Positions 45,072-62,210 of a stretch of DNA of 64,000 nt are shown here, one piece after another (the first letter of the stretch is position 1; each line of letters opens with the position of its first letter). The DNA is taken from sequence record MW735835.1. One strand, 5' to 3'. The notes beneath the pieces were generated by a model. The model was not told the DNA's origin, did not search any database, and saw only the letters and a program-made list of their open reading frames with translations. The translations under genes were made by a program, and so were the position numbers.

Positions 45072-45809
45072 ATGAGCGAGATCTTGGTTGTAGAACTTCG
45101 TCGAGGTAAGCTTGGCAAAGAAGAACAACTGTTGGTCGATATGGCCAATGAATTGGGTATCGAGGTACAGACCACGTACGAGAAAGTGGTCTCTCGTAAC
45201 CAATTCGCCTTCAACGAGAATCACATCGTTGCGGGTGGGGTGCAATTTATCAAACATGCGCTCCGGGCCTACGGTAAAGAGTTGCCAGTTGAGAACTCTT
45301 ATCCGGAATGCTTGCACAAGTACTTGAAACGTGAAGTGAGGAAGGTTCGCACTCTGCGCGAAGCCAAGGCGATGCTCGATGAGGGCAGAACACTCTTCAT
45401 CAAACCGTGCAACATAAAGCGATTCACAGGCTTCGTCACCTGCGATCGAAACGACTTCCGGTTTAATGGCGCATCGGATCAAACGCCGGTGTGGATTTCC
45501 GAACCGGTGCAGTTCGACAGTGAATGGCGCTGTTATGTGGCCAACGGTATCATCGTGGGCGTGGAGTTCACTGACAATAGCGGTATGATTTCAGTCAAGC
45601 CTCACGTAGGCGTCATCTACGATGCCGTGCGGATCTTGACGGAGAATGGTGGTCATGCGGGTTATGCCATTGATTTCGGTGTCCTGAAGAACGGCCAGAC
45701 TGTGTTGGTTGAACTCAACGACGGTTTCTCCATAGGTGCCTACGGTGACATAGACCCAGAAGCGTACTGGGAAGTCATCCGTCAACGCTGGAAAGAGATG
45801 ATCCGCTAG
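45072..45809 (+). CDS. ATP-grasp protein, R2K/DUF4343-like
   Basis: FIKP, ISEPVQFDSEWRCYV, YAIDFG, LVELNDGFS-G-YG motifs. Confidence 0.75.
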   Translation: MSEILVVELRRGKLGKEEQLLVDMANELGIEVQTTYEKVVSRNQFAFNENHIVAGGVQFIKHALRAYGKELPVENSYPECLHKYLKREVRKVRTLREAKAMLDEGRTLFIKPCNIKRFTGFVTCDRNDFRFNGASDQTPVWISEPVQFDSEWRCYVANGIIVGVEFTDNSGMISVKPHVGVIYDAVRILTENGGHAGYAIDFGVLKNGQTVLVELNDGFSIGAYGDIDPEAYWEVIRQRWKEMIR

Positions 45810-47235: not shown

Positions 47236-47805
47236 CTAAAGGTCTTTGACGACGTAGTACTCGTGCAGCAGACTCAGCCGCATCTCTTCCGTCACGTGCG
47301 TCACGCTGTGCTGGATATAGCTGGGGAAGATGTAGACATCACCAGCTTTGGGTGAGATGCGATAGTTGCCGAAATGGAACTGACGCATGGGTTTGGGATA
47401 CCCGCGACATGCGTTACCACGAGGGTCGAACATGTTCAAACCATTTGCCGAGTCCGACGGGTAGCAAATTGCCGACAGGACAGACCCGGGATGGTAATGC
47501 GGATACAGGCCTTCACCGCTTTCGATCCACTTGCCATTGGTCTCGACGTAGAACTCTTCCATGCTGGTGCCGAAGGCATGCTTGGAGAACTCTTTGACCG
47601 CCGGAGTGATCACGTCGTCACGGATCTCGATGATCAGTGGCATGACATCGCGCAGGACTTTCACCTGCGAGGCGTCTTCGCCCTGGGTCATGGTGAACAG
47701 CAGGAAGATCTCTTCTGCGTAGGCTTCCATGTCGAAGCGGTCAGCCACGTTGAAGTGTGCAATCTCGGTTTTCCACGGTTGGATGATTTCCACGTTACGC
47801 TCCAT
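47236..47805 (-). CDS. Putative Fe(II)/2OG-dependent oxygenase (PF13759/TIGR02466-like)
   Basis: YPHYHPGSVLSAICYP...PKAGDVYIFPSYIQHSV; start uncertain (47805 or 47826). Confidence 0.75.
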   Translation of the reverse strand: MERNVEIIQPWKTEIAHFNVADRFDMEAYAEEIFLLFTMTQGEDASQVKVLRDVMPLIIEIRDDVITPAVKEFSKHAFGTSMEEFYVETNGKWIESGEGLYPHYHPGSVLSAICYPSDSANGLNMFDPRGNACRGYPKPMRQFHFGNYRISPKAGDVYIFPSYIQHSVTHVTEEMRLSLLHEYYVVKDL

Positions 47806-48226
47806 TAACAGAAATGATGCCCTCATCCGTGCACTCGAGCAGACAGTACCGGACAGTCTGCGGAGCCCAACCCGAATTGATCCAATCAGGGATCTCCTTT
47901 AGACGCTCAATAATGGCGTCGTAGGTGGCTTGGTCTTGGTCGTAAGTGACGAAGTAAGGATCTTGACCCAGGAACAGGTCCTCATCACGCAAGGTCTCGT
48001 AAATGTCAATCCCGAAGAGTTCATTCAGCTTGTAGGCGTAAATGATCGCTACCGAGTAAGACTTGGCCGGGTAGTAAAGCGGGAAGGTCGCCTCTTTGAA
48101 GTAGTGCAGGGCGTTTTCGATCTTCTCCTCGCTCTCGACCATCTCCATCAACTCGAAGTCGTCGGTGTGGTCTCGGACAAGTTGGTTGTACAGGCGCTGG
48201 TTGTCTTTATACGGATGGGAACTCAT
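47795..48226 (-). CDS. Hypothetical acidic protein in the modification cluster
   Basis: ORF overlapping both neighbours; FPLYYPAKSYSVAIIYA block. Confidence 0.65.
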   Translation of the reverse strand: MSSHPYKDNQRLYNQLVRDHTDDFELMEMVESEEKIENALHYFKEATFPLYYPAKSYSVAIIYAYKLNELFGIDIYETLRDEDLFLGQDPYFVTYDQDQATYDAIIERLKEIPDWINSGWAPQTVRYCLLECTDEGIISVNGA

Positions 48227-48644
48227 AGTTGCTCACAAACGAGATGCGCAACTCATCATGAGGTGACCGCTCAACATGATGCAACAGTCGAGCTGAGAAG
48301 ATGACCAAGCGGCCTTCCTTCGGGTGCACACGGTGATGGTTGCCTTGTTGATCGTGGATCACCAATGGTCCTTCGGCATCCAGTAGGTAGAGTACCGAAG
48401 TGAACACATGAGGCAGGTGATCATGAGGGGTGAGGCCTCCCGGACCGATGTGCACGTGGTTCGCACAGATGACCAAGTCCTGGAGTTGCAGATGCTGCTG
48501 CGTCAGGGGCAGGATTGTTTCGTCCGCCCACTTGATCAGGTCTTCATTGATCACGACATCTTTGTCGATCTCGCAGAAAGCCTGATCTACGACCCAGTCG
48601 GGGACAGGTATCCCTTCAACCTGGAAGAACAAAGGCTCGTTCAT
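48207..48644 (-). CDS. Putative Fe(II)/2OG-dependent oxygenase (PF13759-like)
   Basis: TPHDHLPHVFTSVLYL...PKEGRLVIFSARLLHHV; ATGA overlap at 48641-48644. Confidence 0.75.
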   Translation of the reverse strand: MNEPLFFQVEGIPVPDWVVDQAFCEIDKDVVINEDLIKWADETILPLTQQHLQLQDLVICANHVHIGPGGLTPHDHLPHVFTSVLYLLDAEGPLVIHDQQGNHHRVHPKEGRLVIFSARLLHHVERSPHDELRISFVSNYEFPSV

Positions 48645-49666
48645 ACCAGCACGTCCCATTTATTTTTCATGTTGACAAGGCAGGTATCGTGCTTGAGATG
48701 ATTCATGACCGCATGGATATCGCCACGCGCACAACGATCCAAATGCAAGCACTTCCCACACTCAGGCGAATGACTGCGCTGCACCAACTGCTCGAAGTAC
48801 ATCTCTTCTTCGAACTGCTCGAGGTTGATCCCAATCCATGGCTTCTTCAGTTCGAAGTCTGGCGCAAAGATGGGGAACTTCTCGATCAAGGTAGGTGTGT
48901 AGTACAACTTGCCTTGTCGGTAGGTAGCCTCCAGACTGTCCGTCTTGGGCTTGATCAGGAACCGGTTGTACTGGGTATCCTTGCAGGCCTGAATGACGTC
49001 ACAGAAGCGACTGAAGGCGTTCAGGAATGCTTGCCGGTTGACGAGGTCATCGAAGCCCTTACGCACATGCGGAAACACGTACTCGACCAAACGACGCATG
49101 CCGAATTCCAGCTCATGGATTTGCTGATTGGTCTCCACGGAGAAGTTCTCAATGGAGTCGCCAGTCATGTTCACCGTCAGGTACAGCAGCTCGAACTTCA
49201 CGTCCGGCAGGTGGTCAATCACGTACCGGACACGCTGACGGATCAAGTCCTGGTGCTTAGGGTTGTTGATACTCTTGAGCGGGAAGGGTGTCGCCAAGGT
49301 GAAAGACTTGCCTTTCATCAGGACGTTGATCTTCTCGCAGAGCACATCGAGCCCTGTGTCGTCTAACAAGGCCAAGGGCAATACCACGCTGTCAAAGCGT
49401 TCAGCGAGTCCCTGGATCAGAGCATGTTCCAGGATACCGACACTCGCCTTAGAGGCAATGACGTCCACCGGACCAATGGTGAACTCCCGCAAGCGGTAGC
49501 CTTCCTGCTTCATGTCATCGACCAGATCCAACAGATCCCGTCGATCTTTGTTGAACGGACCGGGATCGAAGTCCCGGTCTACCATGCAACCCACGCAGTG
49601 GTACTTACAGCCTTGAAGAATCTCAAGCGTCAGGTTGAACGCTCTGTTCGGAACCAGTGCTGACAT
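48641..49666 (-). CDS. Degenerate radical SAM-like protein
   Basis: CKYHCVGC (CX3CX2C); GPVD in place of GGEP; C-terminal CGKCLHLDRC...C. Confidence 0.65.
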   Translation of the reverse strand: MSALVPNRAFNLTLEILQGCKYHCVGCMVDRDFDPGPFNKDRRDLLDLVDDMKQEGYRLREFTIGPVDVIASKASVGILEHALIQGLAERFDSVVLPLALLDDTGLDVLCEKINVLMKGKSFTLATPFPLKSINNPKHQDLIRQRVRYVIDHLPDVKFELLYLTVNMTGDSIENFSVETNQQIHELEFGMRRLVEYVFPHVRKGFDDLVNRQAFLNAFSRFCDVIQACKDTQYNRFLIKPKTDSLEATYRQGKLYYTPTLIEKFPIFAPDFELKKPWIGINLEQFEEEMYFEQLVQRSHSPECGKCLHLDRCARGDIHAVMNHLKHDTCLVNMKNKWDVLV

Positions 49667-50672
49667 ATTGGAGCCCTACCAGGCAGTCTTTTATTTTCAT
49701 GCGTTCCATGATGTTGATGATGCCCTTCTCACTGCAACTGGACATGTAGACGCAGGACATGCATGGCGTATCTGCCAGATAGTCCAGGGCGCGTTCTAGG
49801 GCCTTCTGACGGGTGTTCAGAAGATTCTCCATAGTCCAGGGGCGGGGAATGACGAAGTCGTCTTCTAGGAAGGGACAATCGTCTTTGAGGAAGGGTACCC
49901 AGTACAGCTTGCTGTCGGTGTACAGCAAGTTCACCATAGTGCCGGTGTGGTAGCAGAGATCGGGGTTACGGCGGCGCTCATCCTCACCCGACAGACCCGA
50001 GTAGAACTGGGTGATGCGGTGAGACATACGCTTGATGTTCTGGGCGACCATCAGGTCCTTCACTGGCACACGCCCGTACGGGATGTTCAGGATGTCGTCC
50101 TTGTCCACCGGGAAGTCGACCTTGAAACCGTTCTTCATCATCTCGTCGAAGTCTTCGCCCACGGTGTCCGTGGTGCAGTTGACCACAAAGCCTGCTTCGT
50201 TGAGGTAGGCCTTTTTCAAGTGCTCCTTCACGAAGTCCAGCTTGGAGACGATCATCTTGCTGAACTTGTCCGACTTGAAGAACGATGGCGCAGCTGGCAT
50301 CAGGAACCGCACAGCCTTGCCGGGTATGGCCTCGTCGATCTCTTCGCACATGACCTTGTACAGGTCCATGTTCTTCTCAAGGAACGCCGCGTTGAAGGTG
50401 ACCTGATGAAACCCCTGAGCCATCTCACGGAACACCGGATGTTCCATGACCTCAGCCACGTTGTCCGCAGACATGTAGTCGGTCGGGCCGATCCCCATGT
50501 CGAACGCCACGTAGCCATTGGCCACCATTTCGTTGACCAAGGCAGCCAGTTTAGGAATGTCATCGACATCCCCTCCCAACTCACGGTCAATCATGCAGCC
50601 GGCGCAATGGTTCGCGCAACCCCGGAAGATGTCCAGGGTGATTTCCAGCCGTTGACGATGTTGTACGATCAT
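49623..50672 (-). CDS. Degenerate radical SAM-like protein (paralog of 48641..49666)
   Basis: CANHCAGC; GPTD; C-terminal CMSCVYMSSC...C. Confidence 0.65.
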   Translation of the reverse strand: MIVQHRQRLEITLDIFRGCANHCAGCMIDRELGGDVDDIPKLAALVNEMVANGYVAFDMGIGPTDYMSADNVAEVMEHPVFREMAQGFHQVTFNAAFLEKNMDLYKVMCEEIDEAIPGKAVRFLMPAAPSFFKSDKFSKMIVSKLDFVKEHLKKAYLNEAGFVVNCTTDTVGEDFDEMMKNGFKVDFPVDKDDILNIPYGRVPVKDLMVAQNIKRMSHRITQFYSGLSGEDERRRNPDLCYHTGTMVNLLYTDSKLYWVPFLKDDCPFLEDDFVIPRPWTMENLLNTRQKALERALDYLADTPCMSCVYMSSCSEKGIINIMERMKIKDCLVGLQYVSTGSEQSVQPDA

Positions 50673-51601
50673 TTCTTACGTCCAGCCCAATTGTCCAATA
50701 GACCCCGGAAGCCGTTACAGGAATTCTTCAGGGAGGTGACTTCACGCAAGTGTTCGGAAAGGCAGTTGCCAAAGTACGGGCAGGAGGAGCAGAAGGGATT
50801 GTCTTGGACCCGGTCGCGTTCAAAACCACACCAGTCCAGATACCCTTGTACTCCATCGACCGTCAGGAAATACTCACGGTCGTCCTTGTCGAACTCCAGT
50901 ACTGCAAAATCCCCAGAGGGCGTGATGTAGATGTGGTCGTCGCTGAATGCATTGCGCTTACCTTCTACCGCCTCTTTTACTTGGGTCTCGTTCTCGAAGT
51001 AGAACTTGCGTGCAGGATGCTTGATCACTGCCCATACAAACTCTTCGAATTCCTTGAACGACACCTCGTGCTCGTTAGCCTGGTTGGTGCTGTACGGCTT
51101 GATCTCACACCCCATGAGGTGCGGGAACATGTTCATCGTCTCGACGTAATCGTCAGGCGTTGTCTTATCGAGGAACGCACGACTGGCCAGCGTCAGCACG
51201 TTGAAGCGCTGACTCAGCAGGAACATGTTGTTCAACACCAGCTCATGTTTCTCACGGGCTTCGAAGTCGTACGACACCGAGATCATGAACGCCTTGTCAT
51301 GGACGATGTCTGGCACGTGAGACAGGTTGGTCACCAGCACGATGTCAGTGATCCCACGGGTCAACAGAACCTGCTTGACGCCAATGAGGTACTCTTGAGG
51401 CAGCACCAGCACCTCACCACCGTAGATGTCGACATGACCAATTTCGAAGTGCTCCATCAGAGCATCGAGCCGATCAGCAAAGACATCCACAGGCAACAGA
51501 GTGCGGTCGCTTAACTGTTGCTCGGTGAGGTAACAAAACGAGCACCGGAAGTTGCAGTAGTACCAGGGGTTGAAGCTGATGTTGAGGCTGGGTTTGGCCA
51601 T
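50669..51601 (-). CDS. Radical SAM protein with truncated SPASM-like C-terminus
   Basis: CNFRCSFC, YGGE, C-terminal CSSCPYFGNC...C. Confidence 0.85.
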   Translation of the reverse strand: MAKPSLNISFNPWYYCNFRCSFCYLTEQQLSDRTLLPVDVFADRLDALMEHFEIGHVDIYGGEVLVLPQEYLIGVKQVLLTRGITDIVLVTNLSHVPDIVHDKAFMISVSYDFEAREKHELVLNNMFLLSQRFNVLTLASRAFLDKTTPDDYVETMNMFPHLMGCEIKPYSTNQANEHEVSFKEFEEFVWAVIKHPARKFYFENETQVKEAVEGKRNAFSDDHIYITPSGDFAVLEFDKDDREYFLTVDGVQGYLDWCGFERDRVQDNPFCSSCPYFGNCLSEHLREVTSLKNSCNGFRGLLDNWAGRKK

Positions 51602-51782: not shown

Positions 51783-52874
51783 TTAACCTTTCGCGATGAG
51801 TTGGACGGATTCGTCCTCGTAAGGGGTCGGTGTCAGATGGGCCGACATGCCATTGATCTCGATGATCTTGGCTGCCTGACTCTTCATCTTCCGACAGTGG
51901 TGTTCGGTCAAGCCAAACCGCTTGGTGTCCGAGATGGTCTTACGGCAACCATTGCAGATGGCAAACATCGGGCAGATGTAGCAGGATTCCTTCATCGACT
52001 GAAGGTGTTCCTGATCCCGTAACGGCAGGACCAGTTCCTTGCCAGACATCTCGGTCTCGAAGTCAATCGGGAACGCCATGTCGTCAGCAAAGGCACCGCA
52101 GGAGAAGTAATGACCACCGGGCTGCAAGGTACGGATACCTTCATCGCAGTTGCGAGCCAGAGGACACGTGGTGTGCTTGCCTTTAAGGCGCTTGGCCATC
52201 TGTTTGGTGTTGTACTCCCACTCCATCAGACCGGCTTCGTAGATCTGGATGTAGTGGCCGTAGATATCGGCTTGGGTGAAGAAGTTGTTCTCACTACCCA
52301 TCACCGTGCCGCGGTTGTTCACTTCAGGCCCAGAGGCCACGACATGGTTCACCTTGGCCTCGACACCCATCTCCTTGGCCAGCCTGACCGTATCCAAGAC
52401 AGTGTGCTCGTTGTCCTTGTCGATCACCGCAATGAAGTCCAAGCGGTAGCCGATGCGTTCAAAGAACAGGTCCGAGACCTTACGGAAATCCTCTTCAGTG
52501 AACGGCGTACCATCACCCTTCAGGCGTTTGTCGCCGTATTGGAACGACGTGGTGATGCCCAGACGTTCATGCTTGAACAACTCTTCCCACATCTCGGGCT
52601 TCTTGTAGAAAGCCCAGAGGTTAGAAGTGAAGCTGATGGATGCATCGCAGTTGTTGCGGTCCAGGATGGCGATCATGTCCCAGTAGTACTGGGGCGGCAT
52701 CATCAGAGGATCGCCACCGTTGACGATGATGGTGTTGGTATCGGGGAAGCGCTGAATGAAGCGTTCGATCTGATCCAGCTCAACGATGTCCTTGGGGTCC
52801 TCGGACAGGTAAGTACTGGAGCAGAACGTGCACTTGAAGTTACAGGCTACCGTTGGCTTGACGATGAGATCCAA
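51783..52874 (-). CDS. Radical SAM/SPASM-domain protein
   Basis: TTG start after AGGAG; CNFKCTFC, NGGDP, CPLARNC...GHYFSC, CYICPMFAICNGC...C. Confidence 0.9.
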   Translation of the reverse strand: MDLIVKPTVACNFKCTFCSSTYLSEDPKDIVELDQIERFIQRFPDTNTIIVNGGDPLMMPPQYYWDMIAILDRNNCDASISFTSNLWAFYKKPEMWEELFKHERLGITTSFQYGDKRLKGDGTPFTEEDFRKVSDLFFERIGYRLDFIAVIDKDNEHTVLDTVRLAKEMGVEAKVNHVVASGPEVNNRGTVMGSENNFFTQADIYGHYIQIYEAGLMEWEYNTKQMAKRLKGKHTTCPLARNCDEGIRTLQPGGHYFSCGAFADDMAFPIDFETEMSGKELVLPLRDQEHLQSMKESCYICPMFAICNGCRKTISDTKRFGLTEHHCRKMKSQAAKIIEINGMSAHLTPTPYEDESVQLIAKG

Positions 52875-53019
52875 TTGCCTGCTCCTGAGGTTGAGTGGTC
52901 CAAAGGTTGAAGTAATCGCGCTTGTCGATCTTGTCCGGGTTCTCGATAGTGAGTTGTTTCAGCTTCTCGGCTATTTCTTTTTCGGACATCTTGAGAAAAT
53001 TACGGGGAGGTACGGCCAT
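52840..53019 (-). CDS. Small hypothetical protein (59 aa) heading the second sub-operon
   Basis: GAGGG RBS before ATG 53019; overlaps the radical SAM start by 35 nt. Confidence 0.5.
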   Translation of the reverse strand: MAVPPRNFLKMSEKEIAEKLKQLTIENPDKIDKRDYFNLWTTQPQEQAIGSHRQANGSL

Positions 53020-53116: not shown

Positions 53117-54118
53117 TCACGCAAGGATCACCTTGAACATGGCCTTGATCGAGCAGTCTTTCGACTTCTCGCCCAGGACCGTGTCATGCAGGAAACACCG
53201 TAGGCCACAGCGCTGATAGAACTCGCAACTGAAGCACCCGTAGTGTTCCACAAATGTCACTTCTGCGTTGTCCTTCGCGATCAGGCCTTCCTTCTCATCG
53301 AGGATTGCATCTTTGCCCGCTTCAGACCAACAGGTACTGATCACCCCATCCTTGTTGATGATCTTGGTGGAACGGCACGTGGTCTCGTTGACGACGTTAC
53401 GTTTCCAGTCCTTGATCGGATAGGAGTTCGGGTACTTGTCGTTCAGCTTGATGTACAGCTGACTGATCAGGTCTTCGTCGGGTTGATGATAGGCGTACAG
53501 CTGACTGGGGATGTAATGATCGAAGTACACGTCGTACTTGTCACAGAGCCAGACGAACTCGTCACCTTCCTTGCCATCGAGGAAGATTTGGATGTTCTGC
53601 TTGGTGATCACCACGTTGACCGTCTGAACGTACTCGCCCAGGACTTCGAGGTTCTGGAAGAACAGTTCACGCTGAGCACCATTGAAGCGCCCAGCAGGGT
53701 CGTAGGACGTGGCTAGCCAAACACGTGGGTCGATCAGCCGGAGCCGTTCGATCAGGTGCTTGACGCGGTCGGTGTTGTGGTAGACGAGATTGGTACCGAA
53801 GACCAACTTGACATCCTTGAAGTGTTCCAAGCACATCTTGCCGACTTGGTAGTACGCCTCGAAGACGTCATCACCAATCTCGTTCATGAACAGTTCACCG
53901 CCGGTGATGTTGACCACCATAGCCGTGTCTGGGTGCGTGGTTGCCAAGAGCTTGGCAGCCTTCTCGATCATCAGATCCCCGTCGAGACCCACTTTGGAAT
54001 CATGGTCCTGGTGGCAGAACGAGCAACGCATGTTGCACAGCTCGAACAGGATCAGGTGGGCTTCTTTCCACTTGCCCTTCTTGTCACGCAGGATGTCTAC
54101 AACAGGGATCAGGTCCAT
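53117..54118 (-). CDS. Radical SAM/SPASM-like protein
   Basis: CNMRCSFC, TGGE, TCRS...STCW, CFSCEFYQRCGLRC...C; TAATG overlap at 54118. Confidence 0.88.
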   Translation of the reverse strand: MDLIPVVDILRDKKGKWKEAHLILFELCNMRCSFCHQDHDSKVGLDGDLMIEKAAKLLATTHPDTAMVVNITGGELFMNEIGDDVFEAYYQVGKMCLEHFKDVKLVFGTNLVYHNTDRVKHLIERLRLIDPRVWLATSYDPAGRFNGAQRELFFQNLEVLGEYVQTVNVVITKQNIQIFLDGKEGDEFVWLCDKYDVYFDHYIPSQLYAYHQPDEDLISQLYIKLNDKYPNSYPIKDWKRNVVNETTCRSTKIINKDGVISTCWSEAGKDAILDEKEGLIAKDNAEVTFVEHYGCFSCEFYQRCGLRCFLHDTVLGEKSKDCSIKAMFKVILA

Positions 54119-55173
54119 TACCAACGCGCTCCGGTGAGAGCCGCCTTCAGGCCTGCCAGGTCAGTGGTCAGGATGTGGCGGATCAGGTTCTCGTCGTACT
54201 TGCCGGTGTCACGCATCGCCAGGGCAATACGCATCTCGCCAGCAAACATGTCGGTCACACGACGCAGGCAGTTCTCGGGTTCACGCATGTTGGCTTCGTC
54301 GTTCAGCAGCGAGAGGATCTGAGCAGCACGGCGGGACGAGGATTCGTCTTCGAGCTGGTGCATCAGTTCAACGGCCTCCATCAGCATGCCCTTGATCCAG
54401 ACGTCGGTCGGACGGAAGTCGTACAGGCCCGGACGGAGCAACTGTTGAGACGCCAGGTGCGGCAGATTGAGGCAACCTTCGAACACGGTCGGTGCGTTCA
54501 GCAAGGTGTCGACGTCGGCGCCGGCCAGTTCCCAGTTCTCGGGACGGGTCAGGTGACGAGCCCAGACGTCCATGGCATCGTGGGCGTTCGACAGTGCGAT
54601 ACGACGCAGGATGTTCTTGGTGGTCTTCGGGATCTTGCCGACACGGGCATCGGTACGCAGGCGAGCAATGTGCCACTCCAGCGAGAGGGCTTCCGGGTTA
54701 CGGAGTACCAGCTCGTTCATGGCCTCTTGCAGCGGTTCGTCCTTGTCGAACAGCGCCTGCACGACCTTGGTGTCGATCTTGATGCTGGACAGCACATCGA
54801 CGCGAGGTTCGCCCATGGCGACGATCAGGCTGTTGAAGGTGGCCTTCTTGCACACGAAGAACCAACGGAAGTTCTCGAAGTCGATCTTCGGGAACAACGC
54901 CTTGATCAACATGGCGTACAGGCGGGTATAGGTGTCGCTGTCGCAGTACACCATGACCTTGTCCTTGCTCTCGAGCGCTGCACCGAAGACCTCGGTGAAT
55001 TGCTCGGGTTCGAACTGGTCGAGGCTCTGGGCGAAACCCAGCTGCACACCGACTTCTTCGAACTCGCCCGGGCTGTGTTTCCAGCCGATCTGGGGCGAGA
55101 TGGTAATGACGTTCTTCGAGCGGTCAATCCGCAGTTCGGAGTCGACGTACGCCTGGTTAAACAGATGGTACAT
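54118..55173 (-). CDS. Hypothetical protein in the modification cluster
   Basis: 351-aa strongly biased ORF overlapping both neighbours; no motif recognised. Confidence 0.7.
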   Translation of the reverse strand: MYHLFNQAYVDSELRIDRSKNVITISPQIGWKHSPGEFEEVGVQLGFAQSLDQFEPEQFTEVFGAALESKDKVMVYCDSDTYTRLYAMLIKALFPKIDFENFRWFFVCKKATFNSLIVAMGEPRVDVLSSIKIDTKVVQALFDKDEPLQEAMNELVLRNPEALSLEWHIARLRTDARVGKIPKTTKNILRRIALSNAHDAMDVWARHLTRPENWELAGADVDTLLNAPTVFEGCLNLPHLASQQLLRPGLYDFRPTDVWIKGMLMEAVELMHQLEDESSSRRAAQILSLLNDEANMREPENCLRRVTDMFAGEMRIALAMRDTGKYDENLIRHILTTDLAGLKAALTGARW

Positions 55174-56032
55174 GTTCGATACCTTTCAGGACATTGAGGT
55201 TGGACTGGAGTTCCGCACGTCCAGCTTGCTCGAGTCGAACCAGCTGCTCGGGTTCGCTCAGCGACAGCAGACCCAGGAAGTAGGGGTTGTGCTCGCTATC
55301 GAAGAAGGCGAACAGGTTCTTGCCGGCGAAGCAGTACTCGTTGAAGAACATCTTGTTCCAGCACCAGTCTTCTTCCGGGATGTCTTGCATCAGCACCGGG
55401 AACAACGGGTGTTGGATGAGCTTCACGAAGTTCAGGCCCAGCAGGCTTTCACCTTCGATCTCGGGGTAGTTGGCTACCTGATCCTTCAGCGTGGCGTAGC
55501 TGTGCAGGGCGTAGACCGGGACCATGCAGACGTTCTGCATCCAGGTCTCGAGGATGTCGCGATGCTCCTCGATGAACGGGACGGGATTGAACGGCAGCAG
55601 GTAAGGCTTGCCCGACGCAGCCAAAAGCAAGTTGATGGCCAGGTCTTCCATCTCAGGCAGATTCACCATGGAGGTGATGTAGAGATAGTCCTTCAGCATG
55701 TCCAACTTGGCTTCCAGCGAGGAGAACTTGATCTCGCACTTGATGTCCAGGTTGGTTAGGTAGGTGATCAGCACACTGCCTTTGTACTTGCTGTTGTCGT
55801 AGTCGACGATGAACTTCACGTTCTCCGAGAACTTACGCTTGAGCGTCAGCATCGGGATCGGAACGGTCACTTCGAGCACGACCAACTTGTCCCGCCACTC
55901 CTGCTCTTCTTTCAAGAGCAGTTTGTATTCCAGCTTCATGCCGAGAGACATGCTGTTCAGGCGCTCTCGGTCTTTTCTCGGATTGCCGGTCAACTTGTGC
56001 CGTTTGCGGAACTCGTCGAGTTGCTTCTCCAT
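55157..56032 (-). CDS. Hypothetical protein in the modification cluster
   Basis: AGGAG RBS; 291 aa; no motif recognised. Confidence 0.7.
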   Translation of the reverse strand: MEKQLDEFRKRHKLTGNPRKDRERLNSMSLGMKLEYKLLLKEEQEWRDKLVVLEVTVPIPMLTLKRKFSENVKFIVDYDNSKYKGSVLITYLTNLDIKCEIKFSSLEAKLDMLKDYLYITSMVNLPEMEDLAINLLLAASGKPYLLPFNPVPFIEEHRDILETWMQNVCMVPVYALHSYATLKDQVANYPEIEGESLLGLNFVKLIQHPLFPVLMQDIPEEDWCWNKMFFNEYCFAGKNLFAFFDSEHNPYFLGLLSLSEPEQLVRLEQAGRAELQSNLNVLKGIEHVPSV

Positions 56033-56044
56033 GGTGAACTCCTA

Positions 56045-56581
56045 TTACCGGCGGCCGCGAGCAGAGTGACAGCTCGTGTGGCAGCTGGTGTGACAGATGG
56101 TATTTTGCAGGGTGAGGACCTGTGCACGGCAGGCATTCTGATAAGCGCTCAGGAGAGCGTTACATGCGTTGTTATAGACGTTGAGGTCCATGTTGGTGCC
56201 TTCGGTCAGAGCGCCGAGGTTAGCACCAGAGGCGAAATCCACTCCATAGACCGTATGACCAACAGCGGTCACATCGAAGATCAGTTCCTGACCAACAGCG
56301 TAATGGGTACGCCAGATCAGGACACGGCACGTCCGAATACCACTGAATAGGTTGGCCACGTAACGAAGAACCTGGGTGGCTTGCAGTGCTTGCGGCTCAC
56401 CGGCGGTGAATTGCTCGGTAGCGAACAGTGCGCCTTTGCCACCGGTAGTGCCAGCGAACCAGCCTGGCAGGCCATTCGGCGGTACGTTGTTGGTACCCCA
56501 GGCGATACCGGCGTTCATGTTGTTGCTGAGAATCGTGTTGGCGTTGGCAGCCAGTCGACTCCGACGAATCACTTCGGTCAT
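56045..56581 (-). CDS. Candidate radical SAM substrate/precursor with C-terminal (CHxS)3-type motif
   Basis: Ends TICHTSCHTSCHSARGRR; starts 1 nt after the stop of the SPASM gene. The CDS is well supported; the substrate role is inferred. Confidence 0.7.
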   Translation of the reverse strand: MTEVIRRSRLAANANTILSNNMNAGIAWGTNNVPPNGLPGWFAGTTGGKGALFATEQFTAGEPQALQATQVLRYVANLFSGIRTCRVLIWRTHYAVGQELIFDVTAVGHTVYGVDFASGANLGALTEGTNMDLNVYNNACNALLSAYQNACRAQVLTLQNTICHTSCHTSCHSARGRR

Positions 56582-56582
56582 A

Positions 56583-57623
56583 TCACACCTTCAGAATCAG
56601 ATTGGTCTGTTGCGTTCGACCGGAGAGGTAACGCAGGGTGTTCTTGAGACCCCCACAGCGACCCTTCTGCCAAGGCAGTCGGTGACAGTCGCCCCCACAC
56701 AGATCAAACACGTCGCACGTAATGCACGTATCGCCCCAAGTCAGTTCTTTGGCTTGTTGCTCCACCCGGCCATCCGAAATAAGGAAAGCGTCGACACCAT
56801 CCTCCAAGCGTGCATGGTGCAGCTTAGCGGCAGCGTTAGGGCAACCAGACAAAGAACCGTCCGAGTTGATGGTCACCAGGTTCTGCTCGCAGTTGCGGCA
56901 GTTGGTGTCCACCTTGACGACGTTCTTCTTGAGCTTTTCCTCGAGGATGTCGAGGGTCTTGATGCGCACACGTGGCTTGCGTTCTTTGTAGCGCAGGTAC
57001 AGCGCAAGGTACCAGTTGTCCTGGTCCTCATTGTTAGGGAAGATCTCGGGGTTATCGACAGCACTGCCATCGTTGGTCAACCGTTCCAAGGACGCTTCAT
57101 CCACTGCAAAGCTGTCCAACTGGTCCATCAGCCAATCGGGCGACATGGCGATGAGTTGCTTGCTGACCGACACCTTGACATTGATGCCCACGCCGTGGGA
57201 CTTCAGGGTCTCGAGGTTCTTCTTCCATAGCTGGAACTGCTTGTCGTTGCTCCAGCGAATCCAGTGGTCCCAGCTGGTCCCAATGAATGCACCGAAGTAA
57301 TCCTTGATGAAGGCGATGTGCTCATCCGTCAACTTGAAGGTCAGGTTGCTGGCGGCACACATCGACACGTTCGGCAGATCCACGAAGTGATCAGCGAAAC
57401 GCTTGAGCTTTTCCAACGGGACCAGGAACGGTTCCCCACCATGGAACTCCATGTGGTAGTGCGTGCTCTTGGGGTACTTGGACATGAAGTCCTTCACCCA
57501 ATCGCTGACCTGGTCCGGATCGAACGGGGTCTTATCCCCGGCCTTGCCGTTGGTGAAACAATGCTGACAGTTCAGATTGCAAGTGCCCGTGGTCTTGACA
57601 TAGATGGTTTTGTAGGCGTTCAC
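56583..57623 (-). CDS. Radical SAM/SPASM-domain maturase
   Basis: CNLNCQHC, FHGGEPFL, NCRNC...GSLSGCP, CITCDVFDLCGGDC...C; GTGA overlap with the JmjC gene. Confidence 0.92.
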   Translation of the reverse strand: MNAYKTIYVKTTGTCNLNCQHCFTNGKAGDKTPFDPDQVSDWVKDFMSKYPKSTHYHMEFHGGEPFLVPLEKLKRFADHFVDLPNVSMCAASNLTFKLTDEHIAFIKDYFGAFIGTSWDHWIRWSNDKQFQLWKKNLETLKSHGVGINVKVSVSKQLIAMSPDWLMDQLDSFAVDEASLERLTNDGSAVDNPEIFPNNEDQDNWYLALYLRYKERKPRVRIKTLDILEEKLKKNVVKVDTNCRNCEQNLVTINSDGSLSGCPNAAAKLHHARLEDGVDAFLISDGRVEQQAKELTWGDTCITCDVFDLCGGDCHRLPWQKGRCGGLKNTLRYLSGRTQQTNLILKV

Positions 57624-58126
57624 AGCTTCGCTTCCAAAAAGAGTTCCAAGCCGAAACTAATCATCAGGGAACTGTCGACATTGATGGCCTGGTGAAGTTC
57701 ACCACGCGGAATATGGATGCTGTCCCCGGCAGTGAGTTCGATCTCGCCATCAGGGAACTTGAAAACTTTACGGCCTTCGACCATGTAGATGACGACGTCA
57801 TCTAGGTCTGTGTGCATCGGGAAGCTGACGCCCCCTTTCGGCGAAATGAAAAGATGAGCGCTCACTGGCCCCACGTGTCCGAAATGCGCAGCAAGCCGCG
57901 CACAGTTCTGGAACATGGTGGCATTGAGGCGCTCGATCCCTTCGATCTTGACCGGGCAATCGCTGTTCTCCAGGAAGTCAGACTGACTGTAGAGGTCGAA
58001 CGATTGCGCGTTCTTGATGTATTTCACCAGGCACTGCTCGTACAGATGCGGGCTTGACAGCAGAAGGTCCACATCGAGAAGCTCAGGAGTGATCCCCTCG
58101 AATTGAAAACCAAGACGTTCGAACAT
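57620..58126 (-). CDS. JmjC/cupin-type Fe(II)/2OG hydroxylase
   Basis: SFPMHTDLDDV (HxD), MVEGRKVF, GDSIHIPRGELHQA (distal His); start ATG 58126 with GAGGG RBS. Confidence 0.8.
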   Translation of the reverse strand: MFERLGFQFEGITPELLDVDLLLSSPHLYEQCLVKYIKNAQSFDLYSQSDFLENSDCPVKIEGIERLNATMFQNCARLAAHFGHVGPVSAHLFISPKGGVSFPMHTDLDDVVIYMVEGRKVFKFPDGEIELTAGDSIHIPRGELHQAINVDSSLMISFGLELFLEAKL

Positions 58127-58173: not shown

Positions 58174-59748
58174 TCAATCCTGCCAGAGCGGCGGCCAGAC
58201 CTGCTGCCAGACACTGTTCACGGAGGCGTACAGACGGCCACCGGCGTTCAGCAGGGCAATGGTCGGATCGCTACCCAGGTTCGGGTCATTAGCCCCCGGA
58301 GCAGCGAAGCCGGTCCAGGTAGCCGGCCACAGTTGGCGCCAGGCACCAGAGATGTAACCTTGCAGGGTGCTACCCACTACACGAAGCGAGGTGTTCTGCG
58401 AGACGTTGATCTTCACATAACGCGAATCGTGGTCACCCGACTGCACGTGATCGTACATCCCGCCTGCGGTGAGCAGGTAGGCATCGGAGTTCAGCGTACG
58501 GGAACGAGTGATGGCGTTCGGCAGGTTGCCGAGGCCCACTTGTGCCTTGGTCGTTTGGTGCGGGTTGTTGAGGTTGGACACGTGGGAGTTGATCAGGTTA
58601 CCGGCGATTGCGTCGATGGCCTGCTTGGTCCGCAGAGGTGTCATGAACCGGTCATTGAGAACACCGGCTACCGCTTCGGCTTGGGTGGCGGTCTGGAAGT
58701 TGTCTACCAGGCCCAGGCCCACCTGTGCTTTCGTGGTGTTGTGCGGGTTGTTCTTATCGTTGACGTGGTTCTGGATGAGGGTACCGGCGTGGACCATGAT
58801 GGCCTGGTAAGTGCGCTGCGGCGTCATGAACGCGTTAGCAGCAGTACCGGCTTCGGCTTGAGCCTGGGTCGCTGTCGGGAAGTTGTCCACGCTACCGAGC
58901 CCGACTTGGGCCTTGGTGGTATTGTGGGGGTTGTTCTTGTCCGCGATGTGCGTGTCGACGGCTTCATTGGCCAGACGAGCAGCAAGCACTGCCACCAGAC
59001 TCGGGGTCATGTACTTGTTGTTCACGACACCGGCCAGCGCTTCTGCGTTGGTGGCGATACCGTAGTTCTCGACCGAACCCAACCCTACCTGCGCCTTGGT
59101 GGTGCGGTGTGGGTTGTTGAAGTCGTTCAGGTGCGCATCGACTTTGTCATCCAGAGCATCGATGTTCGCCTGGAGCTGGTCACGGATGAATTGCATCTGT
59201 TGACGCAGTTCGTCGTGAGACGCCTCATCACCCACCAGGATGGCATTGGTGATGCGTTCCAGCTGCCATACGACGTATTCCCAGCCATAGCTGTCGCCGA
59301 TGTCGTGGATGTGCGGAGCCGGCGGGTAAGCCGTCGGACGACCGATGATCGAACCCCACTTGATGGGGCGTTCATCGAGGTCCAGCTCAGCGATGAGGTC
59401 AGCCAGGGCACCCAGGTTCCAGGAGTACTCGCCACCGACGACTTGGTAGTCCATGCGGACTGCAACCGGGGCTTGTACCTTCAGAACGACGGCACACTGC
59501 ACGTCCTTGCCGCTGCGCAGAGAAGCTTGAGCGAATGGTTGAGCGAGCACGTAGTCGTCGACCGGAATCAACGGCTCACCGGTGTCGTCGTTGACCAGGA
59601 CCATGCTCTCAGTGTAGAACGGGCCAGCCTTGGGAACGAAGACCCGCTCGTTGTTGGCGGAGATCTCTCGGCGTTCCCCGACGATCTTGTTCGTCGGCGA
59701 GGTACCCTTGAGATCAAGAGGGTACTGAATGATCGGTGGTACTGGCAT
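58174..59748 (-). CDS. Tail fibre protein with four H-x5-NPH-x-TTKAQVGLG repeats
   Basis: Phage-tail-repeat motif present 4 times; N-terminal QYPLDLKGT paralogous to 59817..62210. Confidence 0.8.
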   Translation of the reverse strand: MPVPPIIQYPLDLKGTSPTNKIVGERREISANNERVFVPKAGPFYTESMVLVNDDTGEPLIPVDDYVLAQPFAQASLRSGKDVQCAVVLKVQAPVAVRMDYQVVGGEYSWNLGALADLIAELDLDERPIKWGSIIGRPTAYPPAPHIHDIGDSYGWEYVVWQLERITNAILVGDEASHDELRQQMQFIRDQLQANIDALDDKVDAHLNDFNNPHRTTKAQVGLGSVENYGIATNAEALAGVVNNKYMTPSLVAVLAARLANEAVDTHIADKNNPHNTTKAQVGLGSVDNFPTATQAQAEAGTAANAFMTPQRTYQAIMVHAGTLIQNHVNDKNNPHNTTKAQVGLGLVDNFQTATQAEAVAGVLNDRFMTPLRTKQAIDAIAGNLINSHVSNLNNPHQTTKAQVGLGNLPNAITRSRTLNSDAYLLTAGGMYDHVQSGDHDSRYVKINVSQNTSLRVVGSTLQGYISGAWRQLWPATWTGFAAPGANDPNLGSDPTIALLNAGGRLYASVNSVWQQVWPPLWQD

Positions 59749-59816
59749 GGATTACTCCATTTCCTAAAAGGGGATCGAATAATGACACGCTCCGCCGAAA
59801 CGGAGCGTGTTCATGG

Positions 59817-62210
59817 TCAGGCGAACAGGTTGGTCATCGCGTTATCGATAACCGAGATCAGCCCATCGCAGAGCAGACCAATGTCGTTGTCCACCTTGGC
59901 CGCGGTCGATTTCGGAGTCATGTACAGGTTGGTCGCAGTGCCAGTTACAGCTTGAGCGTCAGTCGCCGTACCGTAGTTGTTGACGCTGCCGAGGCCCACC
60001 TGAGCCTTCGTCACTTGCATCGGGTTGTCCCGACGGGCAATGAAGGTTTGCAGGGCTTCGATATCTGCCGAACCGTCAGCGATGACTTCCGGGTACACGA
60101 TGCCAGCAGGTTCTACACGGATCAGATCCGCGACATCTTCCCACACGGGGTATTCAGCCCCAACGAACCGCTTGAAGGACAGTTCGGTGATGGTCAGACG
60201 GTTACGCGAACCGGTGGACTTCAGCCACACTTCCATGATCGCATCGGTACCGGTGCCCACAGCCAGCACACCGATCTCGATGGGCTTGTCGGCAGGCGAC
60301 AGATGCTTGACCGAGGCACCCTTGAGCACCATCAGGAACGGACCAGCGCCATCGATGTTGTCGTACACCGCACCGATCTCTACCAGCACCGTGTGGTGTT
60401 TGAAATCACCGAGGCTATCGTCGTCACGACCACCGCTGATCAACAGGGTCAGGTCAGCAGTCAGGTCTTCAGCAGTGTTGCTGAAATGACCCAGCTTGAC
60501 CCAGTTCGTTGGCGCCTGGACTTCGTTGCCCACGTCATCGAACAGCTGCGGCATCGGCGGTACATCCCACTGGATGGAACTGCCTTCCACGGCCGTGGCC
60601 ATGTCTGCCTTAACCTGAGCGTAGGTCTTGCCGTCGAACTTGCTGGTGTCGGCCGCTTTACCGGTCAGGATGTCGGTTTTGGCTTCGAGGTAGGTCTTAC
60701 CTTCGAACTTCAGCGCGTTACCCGCAGTCTGGGTGGCCAGCCAAGCGATCATCTCTGCCTGACTCATGCCGTAGACACGGTTGGAGTTGGCAGCGGTGTC
60801 GTTCAGCCCGATCTTGTCCTCGAGGAGGGTATCGATCTCTTGCTCGGTGTACGTGCCGACCTGTGCAGCGGTCACCCGGTGTGGGTTGGTGTAGTCGGTC
60901 ACGTGAGCATTGGAGCTGTCACCCACAAGTTCGTTGATCGCATAACGCACCTGGAGCGGGGTCATGTAACGATCGTTGGCAGTGGCTGCCCGAGACTCGG
61001 CTTCCGTAGCGATGCCGTAGTTCTGAACGAGGCCCAGACCTACTTGTGCTTTGGTAGTGCCGTGTGGGTTGTTGAAGTTGTTGACGTGATCGCTCACGCC
61101 CGAACCAACGGTCTGGCTCAGCACCAGCGCCAGCAGACGCGGGGTGATGATGCCGGAGTCATCCACGCCCGACAGGGCCGCAGAGTCACTGGCAACGGGG
61201 ATGTTCGGGACGTTACCCAGACCTACCTGAGCCTTGGTCGTTTGGTGCGGGTTGTTCTTATCGGCAACGTGAGCATCGAAGGCATTGCCAATGATGGCGA
61301 CGATGGCCTCACGGACACGAACCGGGGTCATGTAACGGGCAGCGGATGCACCGGCCTCGGCTTCTGCCTGAGTGGCGATCGCGTAGTTCTGCACGTTACC
61401 CAGGCCGACCTGAGTCTTGGTGACCTGGTGAGGATTGTTCATGTCGGCCATGTGCAGGTTGAGGTTTGCCTGCGCGGTCGCATCGATCAGCTGCTTGACG
61501 CGCAGCGGCGTCATGAAGCGATTGTTCGCTGTACCGGTGGTCGCTTCACCAACGGTAGCCGTCGGGAAGTTATCGACCAGACCCAGACCCACTTGGGCCT
61601 TGGTCACATCGTGCGGGTTACTCTTGTCCGCCAAGTGGTCAGCCAGGCCGCCAGCGTTCTTCATCAGAATCGCTTGTTCGATGTCACCCAGTTCGTCGAC
61701 CACTTCCGACATGCCGACGAAATCGTCGATATTGAAGTCGTGGTTGACCACCGGGAACTGATGCGGCAATTCGACGACCTGTTCCCAGGTGCCGATACGC
61801 GGGTTGAAGGCGACGTTGAGCAGCAGCTCGCTGTACTTCTGATCATCGAGCACCCACTCGCCGCCGATGTTCTGGTATTCCATCCGCAGCTGACCGGCCA
61901 AGTTGCGGTCATAGAACGTGATGGCACCGTAGACGGGCAGTCCAATGGTATGCGATGCGTGAGCGAAGTGGTAACCGAAGTTATAGTGCACGCCCTCTTC
62001 GAGGGCCTGACCTAGTGCCGGATTGTTGGTGTTGGCTCCAGCCGGATAGAGGCGGAGTTTAACGCTTTCGGCATAAAACGGGCCACTGCGCGGAATGATG
62101 TAATAATGGTCGAACATCCCACGAGATTGGATCTGTTGGGTTTCGACCACCTTATTCGTCGCCGCAGTCCCCGTCGGATCGAAAGGGTATTGTGGAAGGA
62201 CAGTACTCAT
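59817..62210 (-). CDS. Tail fibre protein with 5-6 NPH-x-(V/T)TKAQVGLG repeats
   Basis: Repeats visible in the translation; QYPFDPTGT N-terminus; K(F/L)xGKT motifs. Confidence 0.8.
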   Translation of the reverse strand: MSTVLPQYPFDPTGTAATNKVVETQQIQSRGMFDHYYIIPRSGPFYAESVKLRLYPAGANTNNPALGQALEEGVHYNFGYHFAHASHTIGLPVYGAITFYDRNLAGQLRMEYQNIGGEWVLDDQKYSELLLNVAFNPRIGTWEQVVELPHQFPVVNHDFNIDDFVGMSEVVDELGDIEQAILMKNAGGLADHLADKSNPHDVTKAQVGLGLVDNFPTATVGEATTGTANNRFMTPLRVKQLIDATAQANLNLHMADMNNPHQVTKTQVGLGNVQNYAIATQAEAEAGASAARYMTPVRVREAIVAIIGNAFDAHVADKNNPHQTTKAQVGLGNVPNIPVASDSAALSGVDDSGIITPRLLALVLSQTVGSGVSDHVNNFNNPHGTTKAQVGLGLVQNYGIATEAESRAATANDRYMTPLQVRYAINELVGDSSNAHVTDYTNPHRVTAAQVGTYTEQEIDTLLEDKIGLNDTAANSNRVYGMSQAEMIAWLATQTAGNALKFEGKTYLEAKTDILTGKAADTSKFDGKTYAQVKADMATAVEGSSIQWDVPPMPQLFDDVGNEVQAPTNWVKLGHFSNTAEDLTADLTLLISGGRDDDSLGDFKHHTVLVEIGAVYDNIDGAGPFLMVLKGASVKHLSPADKPIEIGVLAVGTGTDAIMEVWLKSTGSRNRLTITELSFKRFVGAEYPVWEDVADLIRVEPAGIVYPEVIADGSADIEALQTFIARRDNPMQVTKAQVGLGSVNNYGTATDAQAVTGTATNLYMTPKSTAAKVDNDIGLLCDGLISVIDNAMTNLFA

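Follow-up and report, generated by a model that had tools for sequence, protein, structure and literature searches.

Here we report an analysis of gp065, a small gene of the Pseudomonas aeruginosa jumbo myovirus pPa_SNUABM_DT01 (DT01; MW735835.1; 265.5 kb), and of the enzyme cassette around it, within a window that consists of the first 64 kb of this genome. The gene is annotated as a hypothetical protein (QTH80265.1). Its open reading frame (ORF) starts with ATG, has 178 codons, and encodes a protein with the C-terminal end TICHTSCHTSCHSARGRR. The final 16 codons (56048..56095) specify CHTS CHTS CHSA RGRR and are followed by TAA. Cys is encoded in turn by tgt, tgc and tgt, Thr by acc and acg, and Ser by agc, agc and tct. 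The ATG lies 1 nt past the TGA of the upstream gene gp066, which encodes a radical S-adenosylmethionine (radical-SAM) enzyme of the SPASM type.

Tail of gp065 and its protein family

An earlier note on this DNA, made from its letters, had pointed out three C-H-x-(S/A) units with a basic RGRR end, a gene beginning 1 nt after the most canonical SPASM gene, and a G/A/N/T-rich N-terminal part. We found the units both in the sequence and in the relatives of gp065, and the upstream gene has a CX3CX2C motif together with a full SPASM block. The G/A/N/T share is 43.8% in the gp065 body (residues 1-160) vs 24.2% in 18 neighbouring proteins. The six frames of the window together contain a single CHxxCHxxCH motif vs 1.7e-4 expected from composition, and a motif of this type is kept in every relative compared. 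Pfam and NCBIfam scans of gp065 returned no match even at E<=10, the latter neither for the whole protein nor for its final 40 residues, and the sole match in PHROGs, phrog_35144 (function unassigned), covers the tail alone.

A word-based search recovered 14 close relatives with 45-79% identity, and a search with the final 44 residues revealed a second kind of protein, of 244-270 amino acids, that has the same end on a different, S/T/G/Y-rich body. Among isolated phages, tblastn identified Chiangmaivirus homologs in Ralstonia phages RSL2 and RSF1 and in Burkholderia phages FLC6, FLC8 and SURPRISE13, with the alignment to gp065 limited to the final 45 residues. A third lineage likewise aligns only over the final ~45 residues, whereas identity stays at 35-58% for the enzymes. 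Searching 1.84 billion representatives with a profile yielded 281 clusters (50% identity) within E<=1e-3, 94 of them within E<=1e-10, most members having 170-200 amino acids and aligning over almost the entire profile, and at least 125 loci were found in IMG/VR. The family is thus large and unnamed, and it has no Pfam or NCBIfam model. Our literature searches on the cassette, on SPASM and virions, and on Bdellovibrio and radical SAM found no paper that describes the tail family or gives the cassette a function; published notes name the cassette genes radical SAM, Fe-S oxidoreductase or MoaA-like.

Among 280 distinct proteins of the family, with a median length of 191 amino acids, the number of C-H-x-x units is three in 266, two in eight and four in six. 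The third position of the H-x-x triad (X3) is Ser in 70-89% of the proteins, depending on the unit, and nearly always Asn or Ala in the rest; the second (X2) is occupied by small or polar residues. The first tail Cys is preceded by V or I in 76% of the proteins, the C-terminal end is R-x-R-R in ~85%, with x mostly Gly, and the median number of Cys beyond the tail is 0. The consensus V/I-(C-H-x-S/N/A)x3-R-x-R-R is essentially invariant across the family, and the tail is under purifying selection. Across 123 distinct tail DNAs the two Cys codons, like the two His codons, each account for about half of the cases, and none of the six Arg codons is missing; it is therefore the peptide, and not a DNA repeat, that is under selection, in agreement with what the earlier note had concluded from the differing synonymous codons of gp065. 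Judging from the alignments, the body of gp065 diverges fast and its tail stays nearly fixed.

Rare members end otherwise than in R-x-R-R (P0065, P0092, P0148, P0158, P0125, P0128 and P0149), some of them with four C-H units and a Gly/Pro-rich end, others with three units and a single hydrophobic residue. On a short Dysosmobacter contig (L124:3907-4266(-)), one protein has two consecutive (C-H-x-S)x3 blocks followed by R-G-R-R.

Cassette around gp065 and its conservation in phages

The genes of the locus follow each other on the minus strand in the order gp069, gp068, gp067, gp066, gp065, gp064, gp063, gp062, gp061, gp060-gp057, gp056, gp055 and gp054 (Table 1). The motif CX3CX2C is kept in all six radical-SAM proteins, and a SPASM-type block is present only in gp060, gp062 and gp066. 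As superfamilies, JmjC-like cupins and 2-oxoglutarate (2OG) oxygenases hint at hydroxylation too.

Table 1. Genes and protein regions of the gp065 locus in DT01, in the order of the minus strand.
Feature	Coordinates	Strand	Description and basis
gp069 and gp068	58174..62210	-	paralogous fibre-like proteins directly upstream of the cassette; SURPRISE13 (S13) ortholog annotated as virion structural protein
gp067	57620..58126	-	cupin / JmjC-like oxygenase fold; domain match, annotation, BLASTP ortholog
gp066	56583..57623	-	radical-SAM/SPASM enzyme without RRE-sized N-terminal extension; most constant neighbour of the tail gene
gp065	56045..56581	-	family member with Cys-His tail; 178 amino acids, coordinates including the stop codon
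gp065 body domain	56102..56581	-	residues 1-160; predicted folded alpha/beta, fast-evolving, without PDB fold match; predicted structure, profile comparisons
gp065 conserved tail	56048..56101	-	residues 161-178, T-I-(C-H-x-S)x3-R-G-R-R; invariant columns, family statistics, scrambled codons
gp064	55157..56032	-	phrog_20767, function unassigned; directly downstream of the tail gene
gp063	54118..55173	-	function unassigned; kept in closer relatives only
gp062	53117..54118	-	radical-SAM/SPASM enzyme
gp061	52840..53019	-	59-amino-acid ORF between two radical-SAM genes, zero Cys
gp060	51783..52874	-	radical-SAM enzyme with SPASM-like block; best conserved cassette enzyme, 57% identity across lineages
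gp059	50669..51601	-	radical-SAM enzyme
gp058 and gp057	48641..50672	-	radical-SAM-like paralogs of each other, CX3CX2C kept
gp056, gp055 and gp054	47236..48644	-	2OG-Fe(II) oxygenases (gp054, gp056) flanking gp055 (conserved, function unassigned)

Co-occurrence of these genes was counted in 80 IMG/VR loci. An ortholog of gp066 is present in 78 of them, always on the same strand as the tail gene and in 73 ending just upstream of it, which speaks against the case, raised in the earlier note, of homologs that occur apart from radical-SAM genes. Orthologs of gp062 and gp064 were found in 77 and 75 loci, respectively, the latter in 74 just downstream of the tail gene, and the cupin gp067 and gp060 each have an ortholog in 70. 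No protease or exporter was seen among the constant members of the cassette. Fibres of the DT01 type (gp068/069) occur in 19 loci only, their position being occupied by Peptidase_S74 or Phage_fiber_2 fibres in other lineages. Fibre genes directly precede the cassette in all lineages; as the fibre type varies and the tail gene stays, the constant partner of the enzymes is the tail protein and not a particular fibre.

BLASTP comparison with SURPRISE13 and a 160-kb metagenomic phage contig identified one-to-one orthologs of the cupin, gp066, gp064, gp062, gp060, gp059, gp057/058, gp055 and gp054, at 28-58% identity. The order of the cassette is shared by Bdellovibrionota chromosomes and by RSL2, RSF1, FLC6, FLC8, SURPRISE13, Agrobacterium phage Atu_ph07 and Sinorhizobium phage Phosso; in the last two, a gp066 ortholog is present and the next gene ends in the same tail. 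Relatives such as Noxifer, by contrast, have no gp066. In Atu_ph07 (L146) and Phosso (L147), phages of ~470-490 kb, the cassette follows the gene for a giant virion structural protein of >4400 codons.

Cassette in Bdellovibrionota

A degenerate DNA pattern of the tail was found at 47 places in one-genome-per-species bacterial and archaeal assemblies, four of which were discarded as low-complexity CHCHCH false positives. Most of the others encode proteins of 125-237 amino acids in Bdellovibrionota (Bdellovibrio, Bacteriovoracaceae, Halobacteriovoraceae and Pseudobdellovibrionaceae), and the contigs that carry some of these tail genes measure 1.3-2.8 Mb. Within the 8-kb loci there are orthologs of the cassette enzymes; in one operon the tail gene is followed by gp066-, gp064-, gp057/058-, gp062-, gp060-, gp059- and gp055-like genes. 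The cassette was seen in loci L100, L103, L107-L112, L116-L118, L120, L128, L131-L139 and L143-L145, and some Bdellovibrionota loci add a B12-binding radical-SAM gene.

In 20-kb views the flanks are cellular (helicase, aldolase, cbb3 oxidase, P-type ATPase, glutamate dehydrogenase and urocanase genes), and capsid or terminase genes were not found. A prophage origin was therefore rejected: the flanking genes, among them urocanase, cbb3 oxidase, glutamate dehydrogenase and helicase, are cellular, and there were zero phage genes in ~20 kb. Each view contains a 367-430-amino-acid Peptidase_S74 protein and a partner of ~200 amino acids adjoining the cassette. Tandem pairs of tail proteins that share the tail and have different bodies occur at L103, L111, L113, L123 and L140; the last three of these belong to a single Rhodobacteraceae bin, and their bodies are short (125-140 amino acids).

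Enzyme class of gp066

The CX3CX2C motif of gp066 lies at residue 15 and its full SPASM-type CX2CX5CX3C block at residue 300, and the Cys residues of both are all invariant in ten orthologs. The SPASM domain model scores 25.7 bits vs a cut-off of 27. Among the best 25 of 41 matching NCBIfam families, the nearest named ones are maturases of peptides and proteins, namely anSME (51 bits, cut-off 349), YhhB (50), PapB (47), FxsB, AmcB and DynA, of which none reaches its cut-off; the SCIFF maturase model does not appear among these 25. Searched against the PDB as a single sequence, gp066 matches only the triceptide synthase ChlB, and the profile of ten orthologs matches, in order of rank, the cyclopropyl synthase 8vpo (9.2e-10), anSME (1.7e-9), ChlB and CteB.

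From its residue ~10 onwards, the gp066 profile aligns at residue 100-112 of enzymes that bear an N-terminal leader-binding (RRE) domain, but with anSME the alignment starts at residue 13, so that no RRE is present in the gp066 family. This lack is in keeping with an enzyme that recognises a short motif within a full-size protein, which would explain the conservation of the tail rather than of the body.

Body domain and presence of a homolog in virions

An AlphaFold2 model of gp065, computed with 14 relatives, shows a confident alpha/beta domain (predicted local distance difference test (pLDDT) 85.4, predicted template-modelling score (pTM) 0.80), whose last strand (residues 156-163) runs into a low-confidence tail. 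No known fold was recognised by Foldseek against the PDB (best E 0.4, template-modelling (TM) score <0.2), and sequence profiles of the gp065 and gp064 families gave no match in the PDB. The BFVD matches to the model are uncharacterised phage proteins only, including a 296-amino-acid protein of Atu_ph07 and three paralogs of 504-660 amino acids from one uncultured myovirus. In profile-profile comparison (hhalign), the DT01 group aligned with the Bdellovibrionota group over 116 columns (probability 98.5%, E 2e-15) and, over 90, with the third lineage. Homology therefore covers the C-terminal half of the body, leaving its N-terminal half free to vary. In longer relatives the domain stands behind a glycine-rich domain (Gly_rich_2, PF21722) or ahead of a Peptidase_S74 fibre chaperone, and one Laminin_G/Ig protein contains several partial copies of it.

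The homolog in Atu_ph07, gp170, has 296 amino acids (computed mass 31.89 kDa) and the tail of the family, and its gene directly follows the radical-SAM gene gp171. In the published proteome of purified Atu_ph07 virions, Gp170 (31.89 kDa) was identified by 8 unique peptides that cover 35.16% of it; it was present in gel slices 1-9 and peaked in slice 1, where proteins of 75-139 kDa peak. The neighbouring enzymes gp171, gp168 and gp165 are absent from the virion list, as is gp169 (PMC6102473 Table S5). At least this one family member is therefore a particle protein. Its migration far above monomer size after sodium dodecyl sulphate (SDS) and heat fits either covalent linkage or a very stable oligomer. 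Taken with the confident fold and the fusions to fibre and adhesin domains, the virion data agree with the suggestion of the earlier note that the N-terminal part is a virion-type domain and not a leader. The products of gp176 and gp177, which lie between the giant structural gene and the cassette of Atu_ph07, are also virion proteins in that proteome.

Proposed function of the tail and alternative explanations

We consider it probable (at roughly 60%) that enzymes cross-link the tail and that the protein bearing it is associated with the virion or the fibre. On this proposal gp065 would be a virion-associated structural protein, probably linked to the fibre or baseplate, with two parts: a fast-evolving globular body, possibly in contact with the host or the fibre, and an invariant C-terminal tail of 16-18 residues that would be the substrate of gp066. 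The cupin gp067, gp062, gp060, gp059/058/057 and the 2OG oxygenases gp056/054 would be further probable tail-acting enzymes. Because gp066 has no RRE, the enzymes may recognise the tail itself, in which they would place covalent cross-links, or from which they would link outwards. The likeliest links would be three-residue cyclophanes of the His-to-C-beta kind in the three H-x-(S/N/A) triads, thioethers of the three Cys, or both, and the outcome a rigid tip or anchor resistant to protease and SDS. The central suggestion of the earlier note, a candidate substrate of the neighbouring SPASM enzyme that is probably structural and has a modified tip, thus finds support within the reach of sequence evidence.

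Several points weigh against this proposal. The putative substrate relation is drawn from gene neighbourhood and motif logic, and gp066 is, by profile score, far under the cut-off of every characterised maturase, so that its chemistry cannot be read from its sequence. Two of the tail collections were gathered with patterns that require the tail, which makes the invariance there partly circular; the profile-search set is less circular in this respect, and only a handful of its members are without C-H units. Six radical-SAM genes exceed what a simple model needs for one tail of 16 residues, and some may therefore act on fibres, gp064 or small molecules. That Gp170 migrates in the top band was seen on one gel of one study, and the cause could be an SDS-stable oligomer or aggregation instead of covalent links. 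Finally, Cys and His are well-known ligands of metals, and conservation would likewise be expected of an unmodified metal site.

This last point leads to the main rival, which we regard as unlikely: the tail would be an unmodified site in which three Cys and three His, perhaps in an oligomer, bind Zn, Fe, Cu or Ni and stabilise or assemble the fibre tip, and the radical-SAM cassette would act elsewhere, on fibre proteins, gp064 or a small molecule. T4-type phage fibre tips hold metal ions on His motifs, and a similar arrangement here would account for the fact that the invariant residues are exactly Cys and His, that most members have no other Cys, and that the tail has low confidence in the monomer model, as expected of a stretch needing a ligand or partner to become ordered; the place of Gp170 in slice 1 could also be due to SDS-stable oligomers. 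However, metal binding requires neither the restriction of X3 to Ser, Asn and Ala nor that of X2 to small residues, and the near-absolute adjacency of a SPASM enzyme that has no other obvious substrate argues against it. So does the switch of fibre types between lineages in which the tail protein persists. A classical ribosomally synthesised and post-translationally modified peptide (RiPP), in which the 160-residue body is a cleaved leader and the modified peptide of 16-18 residues an antibiotic, signal or cofactor, appears improbable. A conserved core beside SPASM enzymes, the tandem precursor paralogs of some loci, and the Bdellovibrionota tail gene at the head of a compact enzyme operon do resemble RiPP clusters, but the body is confidently folded, common to phage and predator lineages, and fused elsewhere to adhesin or fibre domains. 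The same rival is further weakened by the recovery of the Atu_ph07 homolog from virions at 35% coverage, by a cassette with no constant protease or exporter, and by the missing RRE of gp066.

Improbable as well, in our view, is an activity of the anSME kind, in which gp066 would oxidise a Cys (or Ser) of the tail to a reactive aldehyde that then bonds to a partner. The rank of anSME among the NCBIfam and PDB-profile matches, first and second respectively, and its full-length alignment from residue 13 suggest such a role, as do its own leader-free action on a short motif, the Arg always found four residues after the last tail Cys, and the high-mass species in Atu_ph07 virions. Yet 51 bits stand against a cut-off of 349, the Pfam scan of gp065 gave no sulfatase domain, and an aldehyde would leave the three repeated units and the invariant His unexplained. 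We also considered whether the overlapping C-x3-C-H spacings bind haem covalently, in the manner of variant c-type cytochrome motifs. Only the Cys/His spacing of the tail, set beside that of variant haem motifs, speaks for it. This reading was rejected: the domain scans of the cassette show no haem lyase, no N-terminal hydrophobic signal-like stretch was seen on reading gp065 by eye, virion proteins assemble in the cytoplasm, and the first His and the Ser positions would be unaccounted for.

The occurrence of the cassette in phages and in predatory Bdellovibrionota allows a broader scenario, which we put forward as possible and tentative: a dedicated maturation system common to both, in which radical-SAM and oxygenase enzymes rebuild the Cys/His tail of a small, exchangeable receptor-side protein and so give trimeric attachment fibres a covalent staple or a tip with redox or metal activity. 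If this were true, virion structural proteins would have their first case of post-translational modification by radical-SAM enzymes, and viral and bacterial predators of Gram-negative cells would share the machinery for it. Multi-radical-SAM clusters of jumbo and T4-like phages have been known for years, with vague explanations; the DT01 paper accounts for such genes by DNA repair or the boosting of metabolism. The tail protein offers a concrete, testable substrate candidate for these clusters and relates them to the attachment apparatus. Should the tail be modified, RiPP-type radical chemistry would reach the structural proteins of virus particles; the shared cassette would also connect phage fibres with the fibre-like proteins of Bdellovibrionota. 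Together, the observations point to a previously undescribed enzyme-modified tip or anchor on host-attachment structures.

Comparison with known systems

One formal resemblance is to triceptides, which are three-residue cyclophanes made by radical-SAM/SPASM enzymes that form such rings (3-CyFEs), including the His-modifying HaaB, HtkB and YhhB; for the His-modifying synthases, links from His-C2 to C-beta are established on HAA, HNR and HTK motifs (PMC11499958). The three H-x-(S/N/A) triads of the gp065 tail, with their invariant His, agree with the Omega1-X2-X3 rule (PMC11499958), as a resemblance only, and here too a SPASM radical-SAM gene adjoins the candidate substrate. YhhB, FxsB, AmcB and ChlB are among the top matches of gp066, far below cut-offs and with anSME and cyclopropyl synthase scoring equally. 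Unlike triceptide precursors, gp065 is a folded virion-type protein of 178 amino acids and not a short peptide, its tail has an invariant Cys before every His and an invariant R-x-R-R end, and its cassette contains five further radical-SAM genes and oxygenases. The invariant Cys needs a further explanation; it might form a thioether or an aldehyde, or bind a metal.

The earlier note had likened the tail both to the core of SCIFF and to His-Xaa-Ser repeats of the HxsA type. With SCIFF and other ranthipeptides, which carry Cys-to-carbon thioethers of the PapB type, gp065 has in common a Cys every four residues with small hydroxyl residues between (the SCIFF side as given in the earlier note), an adjacent SPASM enzyme, and PapB among the weak matches of that enzyme. 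With HxsA/HxsB/HxsC/HxsD it shares the H-x-S triads, and gp066, gp062 and gp060 weakly match HxsB or HxsC. Membership in either family did not hold, because neither NCBIfam precursor model matches at E<=10. The protein is four times as long as the SCIFF name implies (178 vs ~45 amino acids), its invariant His has no counterpart in SCIFF, and its hosts are phages and Bdellovibrionota. The Hxs gene set is different, and the maturase scores of PapB, HxsB and HxsC are ~19-47 bits vs cut-offs of 268-370 (HxsB 26 and 19 bits vs 370, HxsC 21-25 vs 268).

Among modifiers of full-size proteins, anSME works leader-free on a short motif inside its sulfatase, and it resembles gp066 as a SPASM enzyme without RRE and through the match ranks given above; gp065 differs in having no sulfatase domain by Pfam, three repeated units, and many more enzymes at its locus. 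In the gamma subunit of quinohemoprotein amine dehydrogenase, several intramolecular Cys thioether cross-links are made by the SPASM enzyme QhpD, and the subunit stays in the complex. The likeness lies in a substrate that is a small protein subunit rather than a released peptide, and the QhpD model is a faint match, whereas the gp065 locus has no dehydrogenase partners, a different motif, and a virion context. The adhesins and metal-stabilised tips of T4-type fibres are likewise comparable to this small fast-evolving protein encoded directly after fibre genes, with its glycine-rich and Peptidase_S74 fusions and the presence of the Atu_ph07 homolog in virions. However, no sequence or fold relation to them was found by Pfam or by Foldseek against the PDB, and the radical-SAM cassette has no counterpart there.

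Other features of the window

The fibre-like proteins upstream of the cassette, for which no Pfam domain match was found, contain copies of the motif NNPHxTTKAQVGLGxVxN, four in gp068 (58174..59748(-)) and three in gp069 (59817..62210(-)), and these 18-residue copies are spaced 61 residues apart. A scan for sigma-70 promoters and terminators at 45.5-62.5 kb gave no excess over shuffles. Nearly all genes have long ORFs on the opposite strand, 56376..57230(+) and 59736..62015(+) among them, which are not genes but by-products of the 55-60% G+C content. At the position of gp061, close relatives (L003 and L008) have small ORFs of 55-82 amino acids. Just past the cassette, on the opposite strand, lies a gene for an ATP-grasp protein of the R2K clade (PF18299, E 5e-31; 45072..45809(+)).

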